Shown here: positions 25,796-64,000 of the stretch, one piece after another
How positions within the stretch are numbered: the first letter of the stretch is position 1
Layout: each line of letters starts with the position of its first letter
From: Octopus bimaculoides
Lineage: Eukaryota
Direction of reading: 5' to 3'
Assembly (NCBI RefSeq): GCF_001194135.2
Contig: NC_068984.1
Location: 144,361,821-144,425,820 of the forward strand
Length of the DNA stretch: 64,000 nt
The notes under the pieces: generated by a model
What the model saw: only the letters and a program-made list of their open reading frames with translations
What the model was told of the DNA's origin: nothing
Database searches by the model: none
Program-made: the position numbers and the translations under genes

Positions 25796-26403
25796 TGCTG
25801 TGCGTGAGAAGACCCAGCAAGCCAAGTGAGACCATAATCCGAGGCTTCTGCGAGGGGTGTAGCCAGCCCACTTATGCGTACCTTTCTTTCATTAGACACT
25901 AAACTCCGCTTGCGAAGACCTGTTGGGGCAAGTAAAAGCGAAATCGTGATGGCACCTGTGGCAGTGGAGCGCTAAGAGCACCGTCCGAGTATGATCATTG
26001 CCAGAGCAGCTGTCTGGCTTCCATGCCAGTGGCATGTAAATAGCACCATTCAAACGTGTTCATTACCAGCGTCGCCTTACTGGCACTTGTGCCAGTGGCA
26101 TGTGAAAAAACATTTGAGTGAGGTCGTTGCCAGTGCCGCTGGACTGGCTCCTGTGCAGGTGGCACGTAAAAAACACCATTTTGAGCATGGCTGTTGCCAG
26201 TATCGCCTGGCTGGCCTTTGTACCGGTGGCATGTAAAAGCACCCACTACACTCTCGGAGTGATTGGCGTTAGGAAGGGCATCCAGCTGTAGAAACTCTGC
26301 CAAATCAGATTGGAGCCTGGTGTAGTCATCTGGTTCGCCAGTCCTCAGTCAAATCGTCCAACCCATGCTAGCATGGAAAGCGGACGTTAAATGATGATGA
26401 TGA
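25796..26403 (+). mobile_element. RTE LINE 3' end with (GAT)n tail
   Basis: Same sequence as 17430-17886, ending ggacgttaaatgatgatgatga. Confidence 0.8.
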
Positions 26404-26889
26404 TTATACTACGTTATGGCAGCATTCACCAACTTAATCAAGGAAACTGTCCAGAAGAGTTGCTCAAGGTGTCATGCAGTGGGATTGAACCTGGAACCAT
26501 GTGGTTTGGAAGCAAGATTGTTAACCATACATCCACACTTACAGGATGTGATGTGAAAGAAATTTGACTGCTGTTTCTAGCAGATCAAGCACCCAAATGG
26601 ATGCTGGTATGTGTGTATGTATGGTTACTTCTGTTCATACTTCCCTTACTGATTAACTTTCAAATGTTTTGTGCCAACAAAGAAGTTTCCTTACAAAGTT
26701 ACTCGACCTGCTAGAAATAATAGCCAAATCTCCATCAGATCTATTTCATATAATGAATGAAATAGAGCACAGAAAGCAAAAACAAATCCCACAAAGCATT
26801 CCAAGTTGAAACCTCCATCATGGTTATTTTTTTCCTTTCATCCTTTCAAGTACCAGTCATGTACTGGGCTCAATTTGTCTCTCTGCTTT

Positions 26890-35471: not shown

Positions 35472-36709
35472 GTTGGCACTTTTTTTTTATATTCTTGTGA
35501 CTTCATGTTTTTCTTTTTTTAAATGTTTCTTTCCTATTGTCACAGTTTCTTTTTTTTCTCTCTCACTCTGCCTTTCTCTCTTTCTTGCTCTCACTTGCAT
35601 TACCTCTTTCTCTCTTACTTGCTCTGCCTCTCTCTCACTCTTCCTCTTTCTCTATCTAACTCTCTTTCATTCACTCTTCTTTCTCTCTCTCACACTCTCT
35701 CTCTCATTTGATTTTTCTCTGTTGTGAAATCTTTTTCTGTCTTTTTCTTATCTTTTATTTGCTGTTAAAACAATGACCTCTGACCCCTGACCTAATTCAA
35801 CTTCTGTTTTCATCTTACTAAAAGTTTGGTCTTTGCTGAGTTTTGAACCTGGGTCCTTCAACCGCACATCATGTTTTCCTTCTAATCCACCTCTACCATG
35901 TTGGGTGGTAACAGTTTCCCAATTGTTGGGAGATCTGCGAAGTCTTTAAAATTTGGTTTGCATCAATATTGATAGATTTTGGACAGTTGTGGAAGAATTA
36001 CCAGGGCCCTCTGTTAATCAGGGATGACCATGTCTCTGTGTGTCTGATCTGCAGACCTGGACAATATTCTTTTCTGTGCATGTTTTCAGGCAGTCAGGGA
36101 GACTGGTACTTGTCTACAAATCTCCTCTCTCTAGATTGGTGGTTCTCATCTGGGATCTATATAACCCTTGGGGGCCCATATACCCCTTTACTGTTTTATC
36201 CGCAGGAGGGGCTGTGTGATAAGAAGTTTTCTTACTATCCACATGGTTCTGGGTTCAGTCCCACTGCGTGGCACCTTGGGCAAGTGTCTTGTGCTATAAC
36301 CTTGGGCCGACAAAAGTCAATACCAGCCCCCCCCCCCCNNNNNNNNNNNNNNNNNNNNNNNNNNNNNNNNNNNNNNNNNNNNNNNNNNNNGCCATGACTG
36401 GCTCCTGTGCCAGTGGCATGTACAAACCATCAGCTGAACATGGCCAATGCCAGTGCCGCCTGACTGTTGCCATGCTGGTGGTACGTAAAAAACACCCACT
36501 ACACTCTGTGAGTGGTTGGCGTTAGGAAGGGCATCCTGCTGTAGAGACTCTGCCAGATCAGATTGGAGCCTCCTGGATCGCCAGCCCTCAGTCAAACCGT
36601 CCAACCCATGCCAGCATGGAAAGTGGACGTTAAACAACGCTGATGATGTAGAATGTCTGAAATTAAATCAGAAATGTAGAGTTTCATTTTAGCAGCTCAA
36701 AATCAGTGT

Positions 36710-39645: not shown

Positions 39646-41412
39646 GTGAGATTTTCATTTTCTGTTTCTATTTACGCCTCATGCTCTGTGGCAGAGTTAT
39701 GATCAGTCCTGCTGCTTTTGCTAAACATACCAGTATCTTACGCAGCATATAAAAGCATGCCGTTTGATTGGTTGGCAAAGATTTACCGAGTTGCAAACAC
39801 ACTCCAGCCTCTAGACTATACATGTGCTGTCGCCTCACTTTTCCTCTTGTATTACTACTGTTGCAACAGGCTCTGCTCTTCACAACTTGTTTGTTGCATA
39901 CCACTGCCATTCAAACTCTGCAGTAACCATTTAAGCACAGTCGCCCATCCTCAAGATGTCAGACTCGACCTTTTTATACAACAGGTGTTAAGTTGCAGCT
40001 GACTAAAACTAAGTATCAGCTTCAAGTCTGATCAGTCTGAGAGGGTCTGCAAAGGTCATGGATGATAGCTTATTATTTTAAAAGATGTCTTGCAAGGTAC
40101 TTGGTGACCTTGTCGGTGCAGGTGCCACTTAAAAAGTATCCAGTCCACACTGTGAAGTGGTTGGCATTTGGAAATGCATCCTGCGGTAAAAACCTTGCCA
40201 AAACTGACCTCACCTGTGCTTGTGCCATGTAAAAAGCACCAAGTCCACTCTGCTGAGAGGGTTGGACAGTTTGACCAGGTCGGCATGCTGGAAGGCTGAA
40301 CCAGACTCCAGTCTGATTTGGCATATTTTTCTATGGCTGGAGTCTGGTCCAGCCTTCCAACATGCCGACCTGGTCAAACCGTCAACTCATGCCAACATGA
40401 ACATTTATATATATATATAAGTTCAAATAAAAGTTACAAACTTCATTGAGAGATAGCAAAATCCTATGAAAGTTCTGGTTAGTTACCTGTACAAAGAATG
40501 TTGAACATTACAAATAATAGTAAAGATTGTTTGCCAACATNNNNNNNNNNNNNNNNNNNNNNNNNNNNNNNNNNNNNNNNNNNNNNNNNNNNNNNNNNNN
40601 NNNNNNNNNNNNNNNNNNNNNNNNNNNNNNNNNNNNNNNNNNNNNNNNNNNNNNNNNNNNNNNNNNNNNNNNNNNNNNNNNNNNNNNNNNNNNNNNNNNN
40701 NNNNNNNNNNNNNNNNNNNNNNNNNNNNNNNNNNNNNNNNNNNNNNNNNNNNNNNNNNNNNNNNNNNNNNNNNNNNNNNNNNNNNNNNNNNNNNNNNNNN
40801 NNNNNNNNNNNNNNNNNNNNNNNNNNNNNNNNNNNNNNNNNNNNNNNNNNNNNNNNNNNNNNNNNNNNNNNNNNNNNNNNNNNNNNNNNNNNNNNNNNNN
40901 NNNNNNNNNNNNNNNNNNNNNNNNNNNNNNNNNNNNNNNNNNNNNNNNNNNNNNNNNNNNNNNNNNNNNNNNNNNNNNNNNNNNNNNNNNNNNNNNNNNN
41001 NNNNNNNNNNNNNNNNNNNNNNNNNNNNNNNNNNTGTAAGCCTAGTACTTATTCTATCGGTCGCTTTTGCCTAACTGCAAAGTTACGGGGCTGTAAACAC
41101 ACCAGCATTGGTTGTCAAGCGATGTTGGGGGGGACAAACACAAACACACAAACATATACACACACATATATACATATACGATGGGCTTCTTCCAGTTTCC
41201 ATCTACCAAATCCACTCACAAGGCTTTGGTCGGTCCAAGGTGCCACGCATTGGGACTGAACTTGGGATCATGTGGTTGGGAAGCAAGCTACTTACGTCTC
41301 TCTACTTTCTTACCTTATTTATATAGATATAGTGTGCTTGTGAATATGTGTGTGTGTGTAGTAGTAGTGGTAATTTGATATTTCTAAATCTTTAATTTTT
41401 TTCCCAAATCAG

Positions 41413-41977: not shown

Positions 41978-42789
41978 TACGAGGGGAAGTCAAAAATTAT
42001 CTGCAGTTTTGCCATACCATATCTTTATTCTTGTCACACTGCCTTCTGCAAATGCATGCTTATGGTTGGTATTATTGTGGTCATGTGACTGAAGTTTGAG
42101 CCTGATCACACCATCTTTCTTTCTGGCTTTACAGTGTAAANNNNNNNNNNNNNNNNNNNNNNNNNNNNNNNNNNNNNNNNNNNNNNNNNNNNNNNNNNNN
42201 NNNNNNNNNNNNNNNNNNNNNNNNNNNNNNNNNNNNNNNNNNNNNNNNNNNNNNNNNNNNNNNNNNNNNNNNNNNNNNNNTGGCCATTCCACTAGCAATG
42301 GGCACCAAAGAAGAACAAAGAGCAGTGATCCGAGAGATGGTAAGGATGAACTGGTTCACCATTTACCATCTCTTGGAGCTTGCTGAATCTTCTCGTCAGT
42401 GGTGGAGGTTGACAGGCGTCCTGCTCCCTGTCCGGGCGTCATGCTAGTCCGGTCACTTTTAAACTTCTCGATCCCCTCATACAGTCTTCTACATGGTAGT
42501 AATGGACTGTCCCCATATTGTGCTAAAAGCCTCCAATGAATTTCAGCACCTGACACACCTTCTGTCAAGAGAAATCAAATCACTGCTTTTTGTTCTTCTT
42601 TGGTGCCCATTGCTAGTGGAATGGCCATACTTAGACTGTAAAGCCAGAAAGAAAATGGCGTGATCAGGCTCACACTTCAGTCACATGACCATAATAGCAC
42701 CAACCATAAGCATGAATGTGCAGAAGGCAGTGTGACAATAATAAAGATATGTTATGGGGAAAATGTGGATAGTTTTTGACTTCCTTGTG
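41978..42789. mobile_element. Fold-back mariner derivative with ~210-bp inverted arms
   Basis: TA-CGAGGGGAAGTCAAAAA termini. Both arms are the transposon 5' end. The minus strand encodes the transposase N-terminus (EGVSGAEIHWRLLAQYGD...GRLSTSTTDEKI). Confidence 0.85.
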
Positions 42790-43190: not shown

Positions 43191-46100
43191 GATATATGTA
43201 TGTATGTATGTACTTACATTGTCAAGAATGTAAATTTGGTTTCCTGTTATTCTACTACTCAATCAAACAATATGCAAAGATTGTAACAGATATTTTCGTT
43301 CTGTTTTTTTTTTTTATTGAGCTTTTCCTAAATCTTTTACACATGAAATATTTCTTGTTATTGTAAGAAATTTTATTTCAGCCTTATTTTCTATCATACA
43401 CTTCATGTAAGTTGACTTTGAATTGTTTTGCTGTAAATTTTTGTGGTTTGAATTTGTTCTGAAAAGTCATGTTTAATTCGGAGTCATTAATTAACAGGTG
43501 TTTACAGTTTTTGGCATTTTTTCATTTTACTGTATATCATCATCACCATCACTCATCATTCACTTCTGTATGCTTGCATGGATCAGATGGAATTTTTTGA
43601 GGCAGATTTTCTATGGCTGGGTGCCCTTCCTGTCACCAACCCACACCTGTTGCCAAAGTAGACGTTTTTTTTTTACATAAGATTGGAAAGAAACAACTTG
43701 TATAACGATGCCACTCATTTACATCTCTCATGTGATGTCTAGATAAAGCTACACACACACCCAACAGATTTCCTTATAGCTTCCTTCTAGAAAACCCCCT
43801 CACAAGGCTTTGGCTGGCCTGGAGTAATAGTAGAAGACACTTGCCCAAGGTGTCACACAGTGGGACTGAACCTACACAGTTAGGAAGCAAGCTTCTCAAC
43901 TACACAACCATGCACACACACACATATATATCTATTTCCAATTTGGTCATGCGTCTCTGCTCTACCCCGAGTGATATTGATGGTAGCAAATTTCTGGTTT
44001 CTTCAATTTTAGGCTCTGAGGCTTTACTGTCTGGTTTCATGTCTTTGTAATGTGTATATCAAAGTTCTTAGTTTAGTAAATCAATTAGATTTAATTACAA
44101 TCTATTCATACTATAAACTAGGTGAGGTCTTTGAAATTACTTATTGAGTACTGCCTTGGTACTTTACTAATACCTTGTGTCCTGAGAAATATTTCCATCT
44201 TAATTATGCATATGTGTGTGTGTGTCATTGTAAAGGAAAGCTGTTTTCCTGTGATGAAACACAACAGCTCTTCGCGTATTTGTGTTAAAATCTGCTGGAA
44301 CTTAAGAATATTGTGTGGTAAGAAGCTTGCTTCCCAACCACGTGGTTCCGGGTTCAGTCCCACTGCGTGGCACCGTGGATAAGTGTCATCTGCTATAGCC
44401 TGAGGCTGACCAAAGGCTTGTGAGTGGATTTGGTAGACAGAAACTGAAAGAAACCCATCGTACATATGTGTGTGTGTGTGTGTGTGTGTGTGTCCTCCAT
44501 CATCACTTGACAACTGATGTTGGTGTGTTTACGTCCCCCTAACTTAGCAATTCGGTGAAAGAGACTGATAGAATAAGTACTAGGCTTACAAAGAATAAGT
44601 CGTGGCATCAATTTGACCGACTAAATGCGGTGTTCCAGCATTTTCATGTCTTACAATTTGATGACGTCATCTTCCCTCACAAAATTTTCACTTGTAAAGA
44701 AAACTTGTACCTGAAGTGTACCATCTACACACTGCCACCAGGTTCATATCCAGGATTCACAATCAAAATATCATTTTATAATTTTCAATCTTTCTTGTGT
44801 TTTAAAGTTATTTCACTTTTGATTTTTTTTTTTTTCCAATCTTTTAAATTTAAAAAAAAAAAATTTTTTTTTTTACCCTTTCCTGTTCAGATCATTCTTC
44901 CAAATTATAATCCTTATTTATCCTCATTGTTTAGAATTAATTATGGATTATCTTGTGGCTTCAAGATGTCCATGATACAATTGTTTATTTTTAGAATGAT
45001 ATTATAGAGGAGGAGTGGGGGGCCACATCTGGCCAGTTTGAATATAAAACAGAATATTTGAGTTGGACTTGGCCAGTTTAAATGCTAAAGGATGGAAAAG
45101 GATGGGGTGGGTGAGTCAGATTAGGGAGTTTCTCTAAGTTCCTTGTTTTATAAGTTTTGTTCTTTCTGTTCAAACATTTAAAGTTATTTCACCATTTTTA
45201 AAATTTATTTATTTCAATATTTCTTACAAATGTTTAAAAGTTATTTTAATGTTTTCTGTTCCTGTTTTTCTTTGAAATGTTTAAACAAAAAATTTGGGGT
45301 GGTGGTGGTAAGAATATCTACATGTTTACCACATATTGAGAGGAGTGGTGGTGGTCTTTACATGTGGTACTACATGTTGGGTAAACATTGGCTGCTTTGG
45401 CCAACCACGTGTTCTGAAATGTCATGGACACTGCTCTTTCCTCCAGATCATCATCATTTAACATCCGTTATCCATGCTGGCATGGGTTGGACGGTTTGAC
45501 TGGGACGGCACGCTGGAAGGCTGCACCAGACTCCAGTCTCATTTGGCATGGTTTTCTAAAGCTGAATGCCCTTCCTAATGCCAACCACTCCGAGAGTGTA
45601 ATGGGGGCTTTTATGTGCCACCGGCATGACACCAGTATCTGCCACAACTGCGATTTTGCTTGGCTTGATGGGTTTTCTCAAGCACAACATAATGCCAAAG
45701 GTCTTGGTCATTGCTTCCGTGAGGCCCATCTTGAAACAAAAAAGAAAAAATAAATTTGTAAAGATTTAGTCAGTAAAACTGGTCAATCAGTGATTGTTTC
45801 CTGTCGAATAAATTGGGCTGTGCCAGGATATGAAGTATAAATTATTTCCGACATAACTTTTGTTCAACAATGTCCCTTACGACAGACATTTTTGTTTCGG
45901 ACATGTCATTTTACACATACACCACTCCTTGTTGGGTACTTACCCCTTCAGCTGTACCCTTTTATTTTGGTACTTACCCCTTTAACCATTTGTTTTGCCA
46001 GTGTCCTTTCAAGCTTATATTGTTTCTGATTTTAATCCCCTTTTCTCTACAAATCCCCGGATTAGTTTTCTCAACACAGGTACAAAGCTACAGGTTTGCA

Positions 46101-47556
46101 TGAGAAGAGTAGCTGATTAGACTGACCCCCAAAATTGAGCTGGTATTTATTTTATTGATCCCTAAGGATGGAAGGCAAGGCCAGTCTTGACACGATTTTA
46201 TCTCAGAACATTTAGGAACAAACGTGGCCGATGCCAGTGCTGCCTTGACTGGCTCCCGTGCCAGTAGCATGTAAAAAGCACCATCCGATCGTGGTCGATG
46301 CCACCCACCTATGGCTCCTGTGCTGGTGGTACGTAAAAAAAAGCACCCTCTACACTCTCGAAGTGGTTGGCGTTAGGAAGGGCATCCAGCTGTAGAAACA
46401 CTGCCAGATCAGGCTGGAGCCTGGTGCAGCCTCCTGGCTTCCCAGACCCCAGTTGAACCGTCCAACCCATGCCAGCATGGAAAACGGACATTAATCAATG
46501 ATAATGAAACAAAAGACATTTTCTCTATTAAATTAAACAGATCCTACTTTTTGGAACGAGGTGTCTTACCTCCACCACGTGGATAATGTAGACAAATTAT
46601 TCAATGCTAAGAACAGCCAATGATAACCTCAACATCATCCACGCTACGTTATGGGTTTCTTTCCCGAGACACAATGCTTTTATCCTGAATTGATGAAAGA
46701 GAGCATGAGGTCTGATGACACCAAAGATCTTCAAAACCCATCAATACTTAAAAGAATCTTAATGTTGACAGACAGACAGACACATTCTGAGTTTTATATA
46801 TATATAGATGACTCACACTTGTTATAGACTCTTATTATTCTGTTTATGAGAGAAGTGATATTCTTTGAGTACGCACAGCTATGGTCTATGATGTTGGATT
46901 GTGTCAGTCTTTGTGTAAACATAGCAATGGTGCAGGGTTATGACATTCCCTCTAAAGATAACTGTGATGTGCTTGTGATCAGGAATTTGTGATCTTCTTT
47001 CTTTGTAATCATAGCTGTGATATGTGATACTGTCCTCTCAGAATTAAGTATTTCAGAATGCCACTTATCATCATCATCATTGTTTAACATCTTCTTTCCA
47101 TGCTGGCATGGGTTCGGATGGTTTGACTGAGGACTGGCAAGCCAGAAGGCTGCACCAGGCTCCAATCTTATCTGGCAATGTTTCTACGGCTGGATGCCCT
47201 TCCTAATGCCAACTGCTCCAAGAGTGTAGTGGGTGCCTTTTACATGTCACTGGCACCTTACAAAGGTTTCAATTGCTTGTCATCTCCTCCATGAGACCCA
47301 ACATTCGAAGATCAAGCTTCACCACCTTATCCTATGTCTTCCTGGGTCTACCGCTTCCACAGGTTCCAGCACTAAACTATATTTCTCAACACAGGCCGGT
47401 CCCTACAGTTTCTTATGTTACAGTCACATCCTCATACTAAAAATATTGTTCACACTTACTCTAACAATTCAACCAATTGTGCCCTGAATAAACTTTGTCA
47501 AATGTTTGAATTTTTACTGATTTAAAAAAAATTTTCTGTTCTTTTTCATTCATTAG

Positions 47557-52249: not shown

Positions 52250-52622
52250 TTTACTTGTTTCAGTCATTTGACTGTGGACATGCAGGAGCACCACCTTTTA
52301 GTCGAGCAAATCGATCCCAAGACTTATTCCTTGTAAGCCTAGTACTTATTCTATCGGTTTCTTTTTTGCCGAACCACTAAATTATGGGGAAGTAGACACA
52401 CCAACATCGCGTGTCAAGTGAAGTTGGGGGGACAAAAACACACACATACATATATATATGGCGGGCTTCTTTCAGTTTCCGTCTACCAAATCCACTCATA
52501 TGGCATTGGTCGGCCCGAGGCTATAGTAGAAGACACTTGCCCAAGGTACCACGCAGTGGGACTGAACCTGGAACCATGTGGTTGGTAAGCAAGCTACCTT
52601 ACCACACAGCCACTCCTGCTCC
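52250..52622 (-). mobile_element. Near full-length tRNA-derived SINE
   Basis: ttttacttgtttcagtcatttgactg...ttaccacacagccactcctgc; many related copies in the window. Confidence 0.8.
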
Positions 52623-55600
52623 TGTTTGCTTTTAATAGATTGAACAAACTAAAGGTTTATACTTCTATAGGACTGAATGCTAAACCTGGGGTACATACCT
52701 TCATCACCAGTGACAGGATTTATGATTTATCTTCGCAGCCTAGCATACCTCTGTCATTATGGTTGTAACTGATCATATTCAAACAACCCTTTGTTCTAAC
52801 GACACATACTGATGATTGTTAGCGGACGTTAAACGATGATGATGATTTTATATTCCTCATTATTTATATTTAATAACTTTTTGTCAGTTTACTTTTAGCA
52901 CTGGCTTATCTATAATAACTGTCACCATCTCTAGTTACACACCTAATTCTTTATAATTTATTATTCTATAAACTCTCTTGACACTATTTAGCATATAGGG
53001 CCTCTGTAACTCTTACAATTTTTAACATTGTCTTATTAAGCCCAAGAATTACATTATTTACATTTGACGGCTATTTGTCCTCATCTTGTTTGTAAATAAT
53101 TCCTCCTCTCTTAAATATAGAACTGTATAATCCCAATAATTTTAAATCACTAGGGAATGTTTTATCTATTGTACCAGAACAATTTTAATTAACTTACTTT
53201 ATTCTAAATAATTTCTGGCAACTTTGGTTGTTATAAACATTAATGCCTTTGGATTATCACGTTTATCAGTTCTGCTTTTCTTTCTCAATTAAGCTCTGGT
53301 CTTTCAACTGACAGATTCTTTGCAGCTAAGTAACCGATAACTTCTTACTGTGTTGGTCAAGCTCTCATTATTATTATTCTAGGATGTTCATTTATTCATT
53401 CATGCCAATACCATCTTCCTCTGTACGTGATTTATCTTTTTCTTTCTTTTCCTTTTACCTCCCCTTCTTTCCTTCTTCCAGAATTCTGCAGAGAACCGAG
53501 CTCAGCTGCAGTTTTAACTGCCATTATTTGCTGGATCTCTTGTCACTACATTCCGAGTGCAAGTTCCGCTGAGGTCGACTTTGCCTTTCATCCTTTCGGG
53601 GTCGATAAATTAAGCACCAGTTGCGTGCTGGGGTCGACGCGATCGACTATCCACCCACACTCAATTTCCTGGCCTTGTGCCTATAGTAGAAAGGATCATT
53701 AGCTGAATCTCCATTAAATGATGCTAATATACTTGTTGTTCAATAATATTGTTTTGGATCAAACGAATGCTGACTTTTAAGGTAATATTATAACAGTAAA
53801 CGTCTCTTTTTTCCCCTTTGAGCCACATTGGCAGCTGCCTTTGAACATGTTTTGATGGGGGACCAGATGTCATGCTTGGTTCCTTATTATCTGCAACTGT
53901 TGGTCTTTGTGGATGAGGTCACAAGACTTAATGACTTCTTTAGGATTATTAATGCCTTTAACTGCCCTTATATTTGACTTTATTCTACCATCCACCCCTC
54001 TCGATTGGCAGGTTGCAGACGCACCCACCTTCAATTTCTTAAATGTTGGTAATTATGATTTTAACTTCACTTGTTGATAAATCAACCAGTCACACGTTAA
54101 TATGGTTGCCTGATAAGTTGGGTGTTATGTAGCGTTAGACAGTCTAACTAAATTCTATTATGCTTATGTCATAATATAGACTCTGAATGAAATAATTGAA
54201 GCAATTACCAGAAAGGCCCATTAGTCTATATAATATATATACACACTCACATACATACACTGTGCCTTGGAAAAAAGATGGGATGGCCATGGCTGGAACG
54301 TCTTTTCACACAAGTTTGCTCAATAAGGACTGACTGACAGCTAAACAATAACACACAAACATATCTTTATAAACATAAATACATAAAAAAAACAAGCTAA
54401 CACCAATTGCTTTGAATTTGTTTATTCCAATCAAACTTTTAGATATGCCAATCTATACAACTTGTCTTGTCTTATTTTTTTTTTCTGATATTTTTTTCTT
54501 GCAATTAAATTTGCAAAATGAAAAGTTCTACAAAAATGGAAGATGTTCTTCCTGCCAAAAATTAAAAAAAAAACAATTTTAGTCTAAAGTTCAGTGATTG
54601 CTGGTAATTAGTAATTGTGGTGGTGATACTAGNNNNNNNNNNNNNNNNNNNNNNNNNNNNNNNNNNNNNNNNNNNNNNNNNNNNNNNNNNNNNNNNNNNN
54701 NNNNNNNNNNNNNNNNNNNNNNNNNNNNNNNNNNNNNNNNNNNNNNNNNNNNNNNNNNNNNNNNNNNNNNNNNNNNNNNNNNNNNNNNNNNNNNNNNNNN
54801 NNNNNNNNNNNNNNNNNNNNNNNNNNNNNNNNNNNNNNNNNNNNNNNNNNNNNNNNNNNNNNGGGGGGAGAGAGAAAAATACAATTTGTTATGAAATACT
54901 TTTAATTGAATTGGACATAAAGGGTGTCATAGAAATTAAAATTCTTTACCCTTTTTTTTTTTCTTTCTTCTATCCTACAGGTGCTCAAATAGTTGATTGT
55001 ATTTAGATATTTACACAGAGTGTAAGGAAGGGGTTCGTATGCAGTGTTGAAACAATCATTACTTTCTATTGTACTGCAGCTCTACACAAAAAAAGCTCCA
55101 TAAAGGTGAGGGCTACTATTTTCAGGCTTATTAAAACAGTTCAACACTCAGGTGTTAAAGTGGTCGAGAAACAACTGGAATTAAGTACAGATTCCGGTGT
55201 AAGAGTACAACTTGTAAGGCAGAAGTGAGTGAATTTTTATCTAAGAATGAAAAAGACTGCTTGCCTTCTGACATTAAAATTCTAGTTGAGATTATTGTGT
55301 AACATAAGAGTGTGTTTCAAGGGAGGGAGATTTCAACAGACAATAAATGTTGGGGGGGGGGGGAATTCTCACTCACACACACACACCTATACACACATAC
55401 AAACACTATTGATAATGCTTTTTTTATATTAAGCAGAAAAGATCACCTATGCAATATATACACATACAAATATGTATATATGTATATATATATATATATA
55501 TACTCGTGTGTATATATAGACACACACAAAGATATATGTACATCATACACTTATGTACATACATATTTATATATATATATATATAGTAACACACACAAAT

Positions 55601-56323: not shown

Positions 56324-58228
56324 CATAGCAATTAGGTGGTTGATCTTTCAGCAAAATATTAACAAAATCGATTTTTTTTTTCTATTTGATGGAGGCATAA
56401 ATTTGTTTTTCTTAAAGAACAAAATGAAGGGCAAGCAACAAGTGAAAAATGTGTTTGTGATTATTCCAATCTAATATATTACTGGTATTTCCATGTTTGC
56501 TTGCTTAATCAAGCCCCTGCGAGGGATGAAAGGGAAAGCTGACCCTTGGCATGGTTTTGTTTTTTTTTTGATGGGTCGATGGAAGTACAACACTATATTT
56601 TGCAAAGTCTTTTATGAATTCAGCCCCTGGTTATAAGGTATGAAACAAACTAATACGGTAATCCCACTTGATCTCCAACACAGCAATGTAACAAATAACT
56701 TAGGTATATATAAATGGGGGTTAGTGGGATGGGGACAGAACACTCTTTCCCTGCCAAAACAAAAAAAAACTTGACAGGAATGATCTTGTGAATGCACTGT
56801 TGTGTGAGTTGACGAGGGCATGAGTGGGGCAATGACCTTTCGGCAGTGACCTTCAGTTCCATCAAAAATATTTAAGGAAAAAAAGAGAAAAGGAGGAATT
56901 AATTGGTAGAGAGGAAGGTTTGGAAATTGAATGTGGACAAAAAGGGAAATACGTGGGCTCAGTGAGAGGACCAACCTATCAACCTGTGTTTGTGAGAAAA
57001 GGTAGGACAAGGTGTCAGTTAACGGTGAAGAAAATATTATGAAGGAAAAAAAAACTAGGTTTTACTTTTTTTGTTTGTTTGAAAGATAAAAATAATTATT
57101 TGGAACCGTGATGTGGAAGTGTGTATGTCTGTGTGTGCATGTATGTATATATATATACTTACACACCACTCATACGTACAAGCAGGCATATATGCATATC
57201 AACACAATCATGCACATATATAGTTTATGTATATACACACACACATATGCATATGTGTATGTCTGTATGCATATCTATGTATGTGTGTATTTTGTCCAAA
57301 ATTTTGTAAAATATAATTTTTGGTAGCTACAAAATATAAAAAACTAAATTTTATTGCCAGTGTGTGCATGGATGTGTGTTTGTGTCATCTGCATGACAGA
57401 AAAACTGTCTTCATTAATTCAATATACAATTCATTAGTGTTAAGGGGATTGTCTAATTAAACTGTTTCATGTCTGTGTTTGCAATTGTATTTGTGTAGAC
57501 ATATATGCAGATTGATTTTATACACTTTTGTAAACAAATGTGCGCATATATATATATGTGTATGTATGTTTGTCTATATATGTTTGGTGTTACAAACAGG
57601 AAAACAGAACTCAAAACATGAGTGTATATATACATTGTTTAATCAGCAGAAGTTACAAAGTAACTGAGGGGCCCAGAGATTTAAATAATGGCCAATGCAT
57701 GGCACTCTTGGTCCTTAAGTCACTTTGTAACTTCTGCTAATTATATATATATATGTTCGCTGAAATATTTTCCGACAAAATTATAAACTCTACACAATGC
57801 ATTAAGTTTTTTTTTTTTTCTGTGTTGCATTTTTGTGTGTGTGTGTGCTGAATTGTGTCGGTGTCCACTGAGTGATTCATCCACAGTGTTGCTAATTAAA
57901 TAACCATCATTAACTCACCAAATTACATTTCAATATCTGTACAGTGCACATGTGATGATGTGTTTCAAGTTCAAGTAAGAGATTGGGTGGGGTACAATAG
58001 CAGGGTGGGCTGACAATCTCGTGCAGTAAACTCCACTGCAACATGTGGAAAACAACAAACATGTTGCAACTGTGCGGTGTGAGCCCACATGTTGACACAA
58101 TCTGCACTGTACCCACCAACCAAAGAAGACAAAACAATGGTCGTTCCTTCAGTGGAAATCAATTTGCATATTGAACTGTTATTGAATAAACATTAGACTA
58201 AATTGAAAAAATGAAGAATGAAGGATGG

Positions 58229-58331
58229 TCAGAATATATCTGGACATCTTGACCAATCACGCTGCCAATAGTCTTTGTTGAAGAGCCAGTCTTCTTTACC
58301 AGTGGTCGGGTGGATACCATAGTGGAACCAT
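58229..58331 (-). CDS. OSBPL1A: Oxysterol-binding protein-related (ORP1/ORP2-type), last coding exon
   Basis: WFHYGIHPTTGKEDWLFNKDYWQRDWSRCPDIF* is the canonical ORD C-terminus. Acceptor tttctctgtatttcag. ORP1 versus ORP2 cannot be resolved from this window. Confidence 0.9.
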
Positions 58332-58856: not shown

Positions 58857-59586
58857 TATTATCATCATCATTTAACGTCCGCTTTCCATGCTAGCATGGG
58901 TTGGACGATTTGACAGGATTGGCGAAACCAGATGGCTACACCAGGCTCCAATCTGATTTGGCAGAGTTTCTACAACTGGATGCCCTTCCTAATGCCAACC
59001 ACTCCGAGAGTGTAGTGGGTGCTTTTACGTGCCACCGGCATGAAGGCCAGTCAGACGGTACTGGCAACGGCCACGCTTAAAATGGTGTATTTNNNNNNNN
59101 NNNNNNNNNNNNNNNNNNNNNNNNNNNNNNNNNNNNNNNNNNNNNNNNNNNNNNNNNNNNNNNNNNNNNNNNNNNNNNNNNNNNNNNNNNNNNNNNNNNN
59201 NNNNNNNNNNNNNNNNNNNNNNNNNNNNNNNNNNNNNNNNNNNNNNNNNNNNNNNNNNNNNNNNNNNNNNNNNNNNNNNNNNNNNNNNNNNNNNNNNNNN
59301 NNNNNNNNNNNNNNNNNNNNNNNNNNNNNNNNNNTTAGCGCTCTACTGGTACAGTTGCCCCAACAGGTCTTCACAAGCTGAGTTTAGTGTCCAATGAAGG
59401 AGAGGTTCGCATGGGTGCCAGTCATCGAATTTGGTTCGATTTCGATTTCATTTGCCTCAACAGGTCTTCGCAAGCAGAGTTTAGTGTCCAATGAAGGAAA
59501 GGTATGCATAAGTGAGCTGGTTACACCCCTGGCATAGGCTGCGGGTTATGGTCTCACTTGGCTTGCCGGGTCTTCTCACGCACAGC
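58857..59586 (-). mobile_element. RTE LINE 3' end (spans an N gap)
   Basis: Reverse complement of the 17.4-17.9 kb and 25.8-26.4 kb sequence. Confidence 0.8.
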
Positions 59587-60813: not shown

Positions 60814-60904
60814 ACAGGCGTCCATTCTTCTTTCTTTTTCTTCCGTTCTCGGCGAGCTGATCTTTGTTTTTCTTCAAGCCTGTTCTTCTCCATGGCAGCA
60901 GTGT
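60814..60904 (-). CDS. OSBPL1A: OSBP-related, penultimate coding exon
   Basis: DTAAMEKNRLEEKQRSARRERKKKKEEWTPV carries the EK-x-RLEEKQR ORD motif. Acceptor ctttgtcttctccccag, donor GTAAGT; phase 1 to 2 joins the last exon. Confidence 0.92.
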
Positions 60905-62941
60905 CTGGGGAGAAGACAAAGAAAACATATTTTGTCAACTGATGCAACTGTAATCTGAGCGTTTATAATATCACAATGATTTACTACAACAACAACAGGT
61001 GTCACTTAATCTACAACCATGCCCACCTCCTTTTATTGAAATAAGTTTTTGTAGTGAAATTAATAAATCAATATTTGTTAGGGTCAAATAGAATAGGGGC
61101 TGACCCCTATATTTCTTTCAGTCAGGAAGTGGTGGACGAGATAAAATACATAAATCTCAACAGAAGATTCCCAAAGTGAGAGAGAGATGCAATACAGACT
61201 CACTCTCAAAGGTCACCTTAACAGGGCTTCTCTATCTCTCTCTCTCTCAGCACTCAAAGAAATTTCAAAAAGTTACAAAGTTATTCCGTTTGTCAACCAC
61301 AGGGAATTTCCTGCAACCTCAACACGATAAGGTCTCACACAGTAAAATGAAACGAGCAATTCAGATCAACCCTGATTATCTACCTTCTTTCGTGGTTTAT
61401 AAAACGCAGTTATATTCTAAAAAAAATGTCTAGAAAACAAAACAAAAAACAGAAAAGAAAATGACCCTGGATGTCCCATAAACTAATTTTATCCCTAATA
61501 TTTTGAATATCTGCAGCAGAAATTGGGGTTCATCTAACAACCCTGTGCGTCTTTTATGCCATCGAACACCTGAGCAATTAGTTTGTGGCAAATCTAATAA
61601 CAAGGGAGATCACTCTCGTGGACAACATCGAAATTCTTGAACATTTTTGTAGACAATAAAGACTGGAAGTGGATCTGGTTTTTAAAACAACCTGGGGAAG
61701 GTAACAAACATGTCACCAAACCTCACCTATTTCCAAGAACAGCAATATTCCCCCTTGGCCACACATGTTTTTTCATGAAAGACTGGAAATAAACATCATC
61801 AACTGTGTGATGGTGATGCTCATTTACACTCATCACATGATACCTAGACAAAGGTATATGCACACACACACATGATGGGCTTCTTCAAATAAGCTCCATG
61901 CACCTCAATCACACAGCCACACCTGCGCCTTTGCTATTATATAATTACAAGAGAGGGAGAGAGAGAAAGACAGCTTGATGCTCTCTGATAACAAAGCTAT
62001 GTTGATATGTAATCAAAAAAATGGATGTCACATTATTTAATCTTATTGGGAGATTTGCATTGTTAATTACTCGGAGAGGATTATGCTGCTATGAGCTGGT
62101 ACCATGTAAGAAGCACCCAATCATCATCATCATCGTTTAACGTCCGCTTTCCATGCTGGCATGGGTTGGACGGTTTGACTGAGGGCTGGCAAACTGGGAG
62201 GCTGCACCAGGCTCCAATCTGATTTGGCAAGGTTTCTGCAGCTGGGTGCCCTTCCTAATGCCAACCACTCTGAGAGTGTAGTGGGTACTTTGTACGTGCC
62301 ACTGGCACAGGAGCCAGTCGGGCAGCACTGGCATTGGCCACACTTGAATGGTGCTTTTTACGTGCCACCGGCATAGGTCTTAGTCAGGCGGCACTTGCAT
62401 TGGTGTTAGTCAGGTAAAATGGTTGGCATTAGGAAGGGCACCCAGCCATAGAAAGTAAATGTAACAAAGCAGACAACTGAAGCTCAGCACAGTCGTCTGG
62501 TTTCTTGCATCCTTCCAATCCACCCATGCCAGCTTACAAGATGATGATGATTATATACACACTGACTGGCACCGGTGGCATGTAAAAAGCACTATTCGAG
62601 CGTGGCTGATGCCAGTGCCACATAAAAAGCACCCACTACACTCTCTGAGTGGTTGGCATTAGGAAGGGCATCCAGCTGTAGAAACACTGCCAGATCACAC
62701 TGGAGCTTGGTGCAACCTCCTGGCTTCCCAGACCCCAATCGAACCACCCAACCCATGCCAGCATGGAAAGTGGACATAAAACAATGATGATGATGATGAC
62801 ACACACCACTATATGTTGCTGTTAATTAGCAGATACAGAGATTTCTGTTTGTCTTGACTGTGTTCTAACAATCATTGTTTTCGTGAAGGTGATGATCTAC
62901 ACACACACACACACACACCTATGTTAATATATCCCCTGCAT

Positions 62942-62979
<38 letters not shown>

Positions 62980-63841
62980 ATGTTAATATACCCCCTGCAT
63001 ATGTGTTCTTTTTATTTCATTTATGATTTGCTTATTTTAGTAATGTTAGAGTAAATGGATTAGCCTCTATCCCACCACGGGGCCAGCAAATCAGTGTCTT
63101 TCCACTCCACTGCTGCGGCAGCAGACCAAACTCTACAACCAACACAAAATGGACAACAGATCAAAGTCTAACTACTAGAACAACAACAACATTAGTTTAT
63201 TAAACAACAGAGTGGGGGTCATTGGAATGCTGAGTAAAGCAGGTTTTTTTTTCAATAACACTATAAATTATAAAAACATTTTCATTGAATGCTATGGATT
63301 ACAGTAAGGATAATCCATTGAGATTATCATTATCATGTCAATATCAATTCTGAAGCCAGGCAGGCTCTAGAAATGAAGAAAAGAAAACAAGCAAAAAAAA
63401 TACAACATCAACAACAATAAAGTTTGATAAAATACCACTACGAAACAAACTGAAACTGGGTGTTTTTTTTTCTTTCATCTAAACAAGACAGAAAGGAACA
63501 AAAATATAAAACTAAATCAACTAAAAGAACCGAAGAACAACAAAATCTACAGACGATGGAGATGAACTGAAGACAGACAGACAGACAGAGAAATAGAGAG
63601 AGAGAGAGAGAGGAGGGGAGAATACAGAGAGAGAGAGAGAGAGACATAGAGAGTGTGTGTAGCAGTGGTGGTGGGAGTTGACGTGTTTGGTAAGAGGGAG
63701 AGTGGTGGAGGGAGGAAGTGAAGAGGAGGTGGAAGAAGAGAAAGAAAAGATGAAGACAACAAGAGAGAGAGAGAGAGAGAAGAGCAGTGGTGGGGTGAGT
63801 GCGGCAGCAGCATCCAGACAAATGAGTGAGGTTACATTTAC

Positions 63842-63916
63842 CAAACACCTTCACTGAACGTATTGGGTGACCTCTTTGTTTTTCCTCTAACCTATTCTTC
63901 TCAATAGCGGCACCAT
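63842..63916 (-). CDS. OSBPL1A: OSBP-related, duplicated copy of the penultimate exon (75 nt, phase 1-1)
   Basis: DGAAIEKNRLEEKQRGHPIRSVKVF; acceptor ttctgtttcttgtag, candidate donor GTAAAT. Confidence 0.7.
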
Positions 63917-64000
63917 CTACAAGAAACAGAATCAGCTAGTAGACAACAACATCATATATATGTAGAGAGATATATATTTATTCTGGAACCGGTACATGTA

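Follow-up and report, generated by a model that had tools for sequence, protein, structure and literature searches.

Partial tandem duplication of the penultimate ORD exon in the octopod ORP1/ORP2-type gene, and its probable use as an in-frame cassette

Tandem duplication of an exon, followed by alternative use of the copies, is a well-described source of isoform diversity (PMC9013439, PMC9741552, PMC8373072). In the classical cases the copies are full-length, of equal length and mutually exclusive, and choosing between them substitutes one segment of the protein for another. Within the OSBP-related proteins, the nearest described system of isoforms is that of ORP1L and ORP1S, in which a single gene gives rise to a long protein with ankyrin repeats, PH domain and ORD and a short one with the ORD alone, and the nearest structural reference is helix alpha7 of the human ORP1 and ORP2 ORD (PDB 5ZM5-5ZM8; PMC6381110). 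On this helix, Arg901 of ORP1L contacts the 4-phosphate of PI(4,5)P2 together with the two histidines of the signature motif, with contacts to the inositol ring and the 1-phosphate made by further side chains of alpha7 (PMC6381110). In the literature I found no paper that ties exon duplication to OSBP-related proteins or that describes the exon reported here, which is already present in RefSeq and UniProt models.

This exon, from here on exon A, precedes the penultimate ORD exon (exon B) of an ORP1/ORP2-type gene of Octopus bimaculoides. I consider it, with a probability of roughly 0.78, a genuine, alternatively included coding exon that arose by partial tandem duplication and adds a copy of half of helix alpha7, which may tune docking. 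Like the classical pairs, the two octopus exons are adjacent and homologous, share strand and acceptor phase, bear signs of purifying selection and, in the gene models, are used alternatively. In contrast to the classical pairs, only the 5' half was copied (45 of 91 nt), the exons measure 75 and 91 nt, mutual exclusion would shift the reading frame, and the annotated in-frame product with both copies carries an internal repeat instead of a substitution.

The window, i.e. the whole 64,000-nt stretch of DNA that was analysed, covers only the last three coding exons of the gene. With XP_052823656.1 as tblastn query, all three match at 100% and no other ORP exon is found, and the 64,000 nt hold neither upstream ORD exons nor a second copy of the last exon; upstream of exon A, the window extends for only 84 nt. 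The original prediction, made from the letters of this DNA, had assigned the region to the penultimate ORD exon of a cephalopod gene, and both the gene part and the taxon were right, as were all coordinates and phases when the window was read again. The features are as follows.

Exon A, 63842..63916, minus strand: 75 nt, phase 1-1, encoding (D)GAAIEKNRLEEKQRGHPIRSVKVF; residues identical in XP_014787919.1, XP_052823656.1 and A0A0L8FQU4
Duplicated segment of exon A with its acceptor region, 63873..63931, minus strand: the first 45 coding bases, preceded by about 15 nt of polypyrimidine tract and AG, from blastn and local alignment
Non-duplicated 3' part of exon A, 63842..63872, minus strand: GHPIRSVKVF and the first base of the next codon
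Intron from exon A to exon B, 60905..63841, minus strand: 2.9 kb, with a CT-rich tract at its start and SINE-like copies at 62123-62358 and 62606-62817
Exon B, penultimate ORD exon, constitutive, 60814..60904, minus strand: 91 nt, phase 1-2, helix alpha7, encoding (D)TAAMEKNRLEEKQRSARRERKKKKEEWTP(V)
Last exon, coding part, 58229..58331, minus strand: (V)WFHYGIHPTTGKEDWLFNKDYWQRDWSRCPDIF followed by the stop codon, which ends at 58229

The minus-strand sequence of exon A (63916..63842) runs ATGGTGCC...GTGTTTG. Directly in front of the exon lie a pyrimidine-rich tract and an AG (...tctgtttcttgtAG, with the acceptor AG at 63918-63917), and at its end the donor G/GTAAAT, whose GTAAAT occupies 63841-63836. 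The peptide of exon A is DGAAIEKNRLEEKQR-GHPIRSVKVF, or DGAAIEKNRLEEKQRGHPIRSVKVF when the G carried over from the upstream exon is included. Exon B has the acceptor ...tcttctccccAG, the donor GTAAGT and the peptide DTAAMEKNRLEEKQRSARRERKKKKEEWTPV, and is kept in every cephalopod ORP1/2 protein seen. A CT-rich low-complexity tract of about 250 nt (63580-63830, minus strand) starts about 10 nt past the donor of exon A. Pyrimidine tracts can bind PTB-type splicing repressors, and it is a matter of speculation that this one is a handle for regulated inclusion.

An abundant SINE-like repeat of about 235 nt, with members on both strands that are 82-87% identical, accounts for at least 11 near-full copies in the window. 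The intron between exons A and B holds two of them, and the intron before the last exon holds one.

SINE-like copies: 62123-62358, 62606-62817, 58858-59087, 22666-22899, 26195-26404, 47070-47256, 376-567, 45447-45626, 46312-46507, 36441-36647, 17676-17884

There are 13 runs of N with 2696 bases in total (7369-7737, 10715-11521, 17887-18036, 40541-41034, 42141-42280, 54633-54862, 59093-59334 and six shorter ones), which mark a scaffolded short-read assembly; the gap at 59093-59334 falls within the intron that separates exon B from the last exon. On the plus strand, an open reading frame of 197 codons (24298-24891) has a sequence that recalls the endonuclease region of non-LTR retrotransposons, with no Pfam match at E <= 0.001. 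A scan of the 64,000-nt window against Rfam gave no matches.

The gene to which exon A belongs is the single ORP1/ORP2-type OSBP-related gene of O. bimaculoides. Cephalopod proteins were retrieved with a chimeric ORD query, and among the protein matches each cephalopod has one gene of this type. The PF01237 (Oxysterol_BP) domain is recognised in the Argonauta hians orthologue GAB1597929.1 (P0161) with 484 bits (E = 2.9e-145); most of this domain lies outside the window, its last 65-90 residues or so inside. XP_052823656.1 (P0387) and XP_014787919.1 (P0198), whose last exons match the window at 100%, contain SEQVSHHPP, i.e. the EQVSHHPP signature. Searched with phmmer against the PDB, the best matches are human ORP1 (5e-163) and ORP2 (4e-154), followed by ORP3 (3e-87) and OSBP (5e-78), and the best Foldseek match is 5ZM8 (ORP2), with a target-normalised TM-score of 0.91. 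Outside the duplication, the ORD is about 50% identical to that of human ORP1/2. The organisation of the gene resembles that of ORP1L and ORP1S as well: cephalopods likewise have a long ankyrin form (P0395, 971 aa), in which a PH-domain match is weak and below the Pfam cut-off, and short forms of 480-580 aa, with the ORD in common. The ORP1L/ORP1S variation is N-terminal, whereas the octopus cassette lies within the ORD, near the C-terminus.

Two further observations concern the ORD in the cephalopod models. All O. bimaculoides models (P0198, P0387, P0388, P0278) have a garbled stretch (VSIFPCTLSKAHTQ... or KPVGFKPRKGWAPPGLS) in the upstream ORD exons, outside the window, at a position where YGVMEVLNHKTKHKGVLTFKQSGWFGRDLHKVEGYIYNAS is found in O. 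vulgaris, Argonauta and cuttlefish; the assembly probably has a gap there that conceals an ORD exon, which would make the models wrong at this stretch. Another stretch that seems to be optional, about 24 residues long (VSTYEQFLKTQK...SR), lies in the disordered loop of the ORD and is variably present in the cephalopod models (P0162 versus P0389, P0161 versus P0160), and is probably another cassette exon, common to octopods and cuttlefish.

That exons A and B are homologous is evident from a tblastn search of the whole window with either exon peptide, in which the other exon is the sole significant match (13 of 15 residues identical, E ~5e-5) and the next best match has E >1. Both acceptors are phase 1, and the exons lie 2.9 kb apart on the same strand of the same gene, with a similarity beyond chance. 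At the DNA level, the similarity is confined to 63873-63931 versus 60861-60923 (73% over 63 columns), that is, to the 45 coding bases and 15-19 nt or so of acceptor region with polypyrimidine tract and AG, and in exon A it stops exactly at the AGA (Arg) codon. The downstream flanks of the two exons align no better than shuffled sequences (67 of 300 shuffles reach the score). The upstream flanks, which are AT-rich and of low complexity, are marginally above the shuffles (8 of 300 reach the score). Comparing the tail of exon A and its downstream intron with the tail of exon B and its downstream intron, frameshifted homology included, gave nothing above the shuffles, and the 3' part of exon A (63842..63872), without similarity to exon B, was probably recruited from intron sequence. 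As the match is restricted to the acceptor and 45 of the 91 nt, with flanks that can no longer be aligned, the event was an old, partial duplication of about 60 nt. The tandem duplicate of the penultimate ORD exon that the original prediction had proposed, with the same phase-1 acceptor position in both exons, is therefore real, but as a partial copy.

The original prediction had also held that the differences between the copies are largely synonymous, and this holds for the 15 shared codons. With the Nei-Gojobori method, these show 6 synonymous differences over 8.2 sites and 4 non-synonymous differences over 36.8 sites (pS 0.73 versus pN 0.11, Fisher p = 6e-4). When 8 neutral substitutions were simulated on copy A, about 0.1% of the trials resulted in at most 2 amino-acid changes and no stop codon. 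With 15 codons behind the test, this is suggestive rather than decisive of protein-level constraint on copy A.

In A. hians (GAB1597929.1), the equivalent site reads DGAAIEKNRLEEKQRGHPICSEKGL and then DTAAIEKNRLEEKQRSARRERKKKKEEWTPV. This comparison, like all cross-species comparisons of exon A here, is at the protein level. The A. hians cassette likewise has 25 residues, of which 21 are identical to those of O. bimaculoides; the first 19 are identical and 4 of the last 6 differ, the 3' part reading GHPICSEKGL, and the constraint along the exon is thus uneven between the two species (p = 0.0012). The A. hians genes were annotated from RNA-seq, from ab initio prediction and from homology hints, with O. 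bimaculoides proteins among the latter (PMC12682272), so the model demonstrates that the orthologous exon is intact in the genome but need not mean that it is spliced in. The protein comparison places the duplication before the split of Octopus and Argonauta, for which a fossil minimum of 29 Ma is given (PMC12682272).

Exon A is absent from the O. vulgaris model CAI9721037.1, and the cassette is absent from 12 decapodiform proteins or transcripts (Acanthosepion pharaonis, several Logan transcript contigs and a JGI contig). Among 400 ORP-family sequences the doubled motif is restricted to octopods, and no solved or listed ORP has two copies of the alpha7 half-helix. The best 150 representatives of an exhaustive search (hit table and seven sequences) contained no doubled helix either, in a set that has no octopus member and a best identity of 58% and is uninformative for octopods. 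Absence is equally uninformative in a search with the 89-residue cassette peptide, which returned 8 short fragments and missed the exactly matching O. bimaculoides proteins. Gene ranges of 132 kb and 206 kb are found among the orthologues of A. hians, O. vulgaris and Acanthosepion pharaonis.

The public O. bimaculoides models combine the last three coding exons in four ways.

A + B + last exon: A0A0L8FQU4, XP_014787919.1, XP_052823656.1; in frame, with the doubled helix
B + last exon: A0A0L8FQ43; canonical, exon A skipped
A + last exon: A0A0L8FQ03; frameshifted tail DGSTMVSTRPLVKKTG...FFIFSI
Neither A nor B: UPI0006956DBC; frameshifted tail as in A0A0L8FQ03

The C-terminus of XP_014787919.1, ...RPDIRLLEQGDI-DGAAIEKNRLEEKQRGHPIRSVKVF-DTAAMEKNRLEEKQRSARRERKKKKEEWTPV-WFHYGIHPTTGKEDWLFNKDYWQRDWSRCPDIF, joins exon A, exon B and the last exon, and exon A is included in models from two independent pipelines (RefSeq and UniProt). 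Its length of 75 nt is a multiple of three and, as the original prediction had reasoned from the 1-1 phase, it can be included or skipped in frame; both forms are annotated at the level of gene models. In the 2022 annotation, made with a JGI-type pipeline, isoforms were added from transcript assemblies with PASA (PMC9068888). A second repeat family in the window (44313-44366, 914-982, 52550-52622 and others) translates to ...GLNPEPCGWEASFLPH..., and the same peptide forms the N-terminus of UPI0006956DBC (P0399, residues 1-32), which points to either an alternative 5' exon derived from the repeat or an artefact of annotation at that end of the model. For the 2015 O. bimaculoides models, the isoforms were presumably derived in the same PASA-based way. 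Taken at the level of the gene models on which its expression rests, an in-frame cassette that adds a second half-helix is supported.

Alternatively, exon A could be a decaying pseudo-exon, a relic of the partial duplication that is rarely or never spliced in and that was modelled since it is in frame, ORD-like and provided with usable splice sites. Homology-using predictors readily take in such an exon. The O. vulgaris model without exon A and the A. hians model built with O. bimaculoides protein hints (PMC12682272) would both agree with this, as would the suboptimal donor GTAAAT, with its A at +5, and the low pLDDT of copy A in the AlphaFold2 model described below. However, the flanks have decayed past alignment, yet 13 of the 15 residues are kept and the differences are mostly synonymous; the frame is intact over 25 codons with the first 19 residues identical in Argonauta, and both O. 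bimaculoides annotation pipelines include the exon independently. I therefore consider a pseudo-exon unlikely, and a conserved cassette the better reading of these patterns.

As for what the cassette adds to the protein, EKNRLEEKQR, present in both exons, is the N-terminal half of the ORD helix alpha7, and the E-K-x-x-x-E-E-x-Q-R of the human helix (PDB 5ZM5-5ZM8; PMC6381110) recurs in exon B and in the 15 residues with which exon A begins. In an alignment of 45 sequences, the K, E, E, Q and R are invariant at copy B, and the arginine of LEEKQR corresponds to human ORP1L Arg901, numbered through the phmmer alignment. The role in phosphoinositide binding that the original prediction had ascribed to the EK-x-x-LEE-x-QR helix agrees with the human structures (PMC6381110), and is putative for the octopus copies. 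Inclusion of exon A places 25 residues between alpha6 and alpha7: a half-helix of Lys, Glu and Arg, a Gly-His-Pro break and a short variable linker.

The original prediction had called for structural models of the isoforms, and I modelled the A. hians inclusion isoform with AlphaFold2 and 45 aligned homologues. The ORD fold is kept (pTM 0.76), with copy B as a long canonical helix (477-498, pLDDT >90) in the position of alpha7 and copy A as an extra, separate low-confidence helix before it (454-465, pLDDT ~50-57), joined by a disordered linker (<50); this placement is partly set by the alignment, in which MAFFT put all homologues on copy B. The best stretch of the Pfam match (residues 99-466), on the other hand, passes through copy A and not through copy B. 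Most likely, copy B would retain the alpha7 position in the inclusion isoform, with copy A as an extra helix.

The opposite arrangement, in which the helices are swapped and copy A instead of copy B sits at the alpha7 position by the headgroup pocket, seems rather improbable for the inclusion isoform. With copy A in the pocket, the helix would break at Gly-His-Pro just past the equivalent of Arg901, and the basic RRERKKKK stretch in copy B would come to lie about 25 residues away from its usual place. If such a swap were true, octopods would have an ORP1/2 isoform with altered phosphoinositide specificity or membrane docking by means of an internally duplicated ligand-binding element, and I know of no lipid-transfer protein of the ORP family with this arrangement.

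The original prediction had left open whether the duplicate is a cassette, one of a mutually exclusive pair or an alternative last exon. The public models bear out the cassette; mutual exclusion fails on the reading frame, and an alternative last exon is found in no model. Exon A is phase 1-1 and exon B phase 1-2, so that exon A on its own throws the last exon out of frame, and the annotated models that are in frame hold either both A and B or B alone. Replacement of exon B by exon A, by mutually exclusive splicing or by skipping of exon B, would result in a C-terminally truncated ORD with a frameshifted tail, possibly dominant-negative or non-transporting. Such a product is indeed annotated (A0A0L8FQ03, ...RGHPIRSVKVF-DGSTMVSTRPLV...FFIFSI) and fits the truncated isoform that had been foreseen, and a form that skips both exons is annotated too, the frameshifted tails being seen in P0278 and P0399. 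With a stop in the last exon, its transcript would be expected to escape nonsense-mediated decay. The tail is, however, read from the wrong frame of a conserved exon, exon A ending in phase 1 where the last exon expects phase 2, and the last 49 residues of the ORD, which are conserved in the family, would be lost. In this +1 frame, the last exon (58198-58331, minus strand) is open for 44 codons, DGSTMVSTRPLV...FFIFSI and a stop, ending at 58198, and serves the two annotated isoforms without exon B. The product of exon A and the last exon looks like splicing noise or a product of enumeration by the pipeline, and a function of exon A in place of exon B is very unlikely.

It is highly improbable that exon A serves as an alternative last exon by read-through past GTAAAT into the CT-rich tract, with a stop at 63438 and polyadenylation after AATAAA (63201-63196): open frame and hexamer are both present, as had been predicted, but the low-complexity, repeat-derived tail is in no public model and AATAAA is not special as a last-exon signal, with 70 occurrences on the minus strand of the window and 3 in the intron between exons A and B. 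It is just as improbable that exon A closes a separate tandem paralogue, most of which would lie beyond the window and which the original prediction had named as a finding that would overturn it; with 84 nt upstream, the structure of the upstream gene is not readable within the window, but there is no second last exon in it, in the public models a single protein runs from one ...RPDIRLLEQGDI exon through A and B to the last exon, and one ORP1/2-type gene per cephalopod was found among the matches.

If exon A is the conserved in-frame cassette that I propose, its origin could have been as follows. Some 60 nt of the penultimate ORD exon and its 3' splice site, with 45 coding bases from the start of the exon, would have been copied into the upstream intron, where 30 nt more from the local sequence, together with a GTAAAT donor, may have completed a symmetric exon of 75 nt. 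In the modelled inclusion isoform, copy B would stay in the alpha7 position and run on into the basic RRERKKKK stretch and the C-terminal WF...PDIF subdomain, and copy A would be added as a flexible, charged helix where the tunnel opens, on the face that docks to membranes. In this place it could modulate docking that depends on phosphoinositides, or closure of the lid, and lipid transfer would not be abolished.

Exon A does not open a long-standing question and is a tidy, fairly ordinary case, though a clean example of how a partial exon duplication gives rise to an in-frame cassette instead of a mutually exclusive pair. Phosphoinositides are either exchanged for the cholesterol that ORP1 and ORP2 move or control its movement, and helix alpha7 is part of the headgroup site. 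An optional second copy of this half-helix, specific to one lineage and conserved there, would be a natural experiment on how the tunnel entrance of this family tolerates, or even uses, an insertion.
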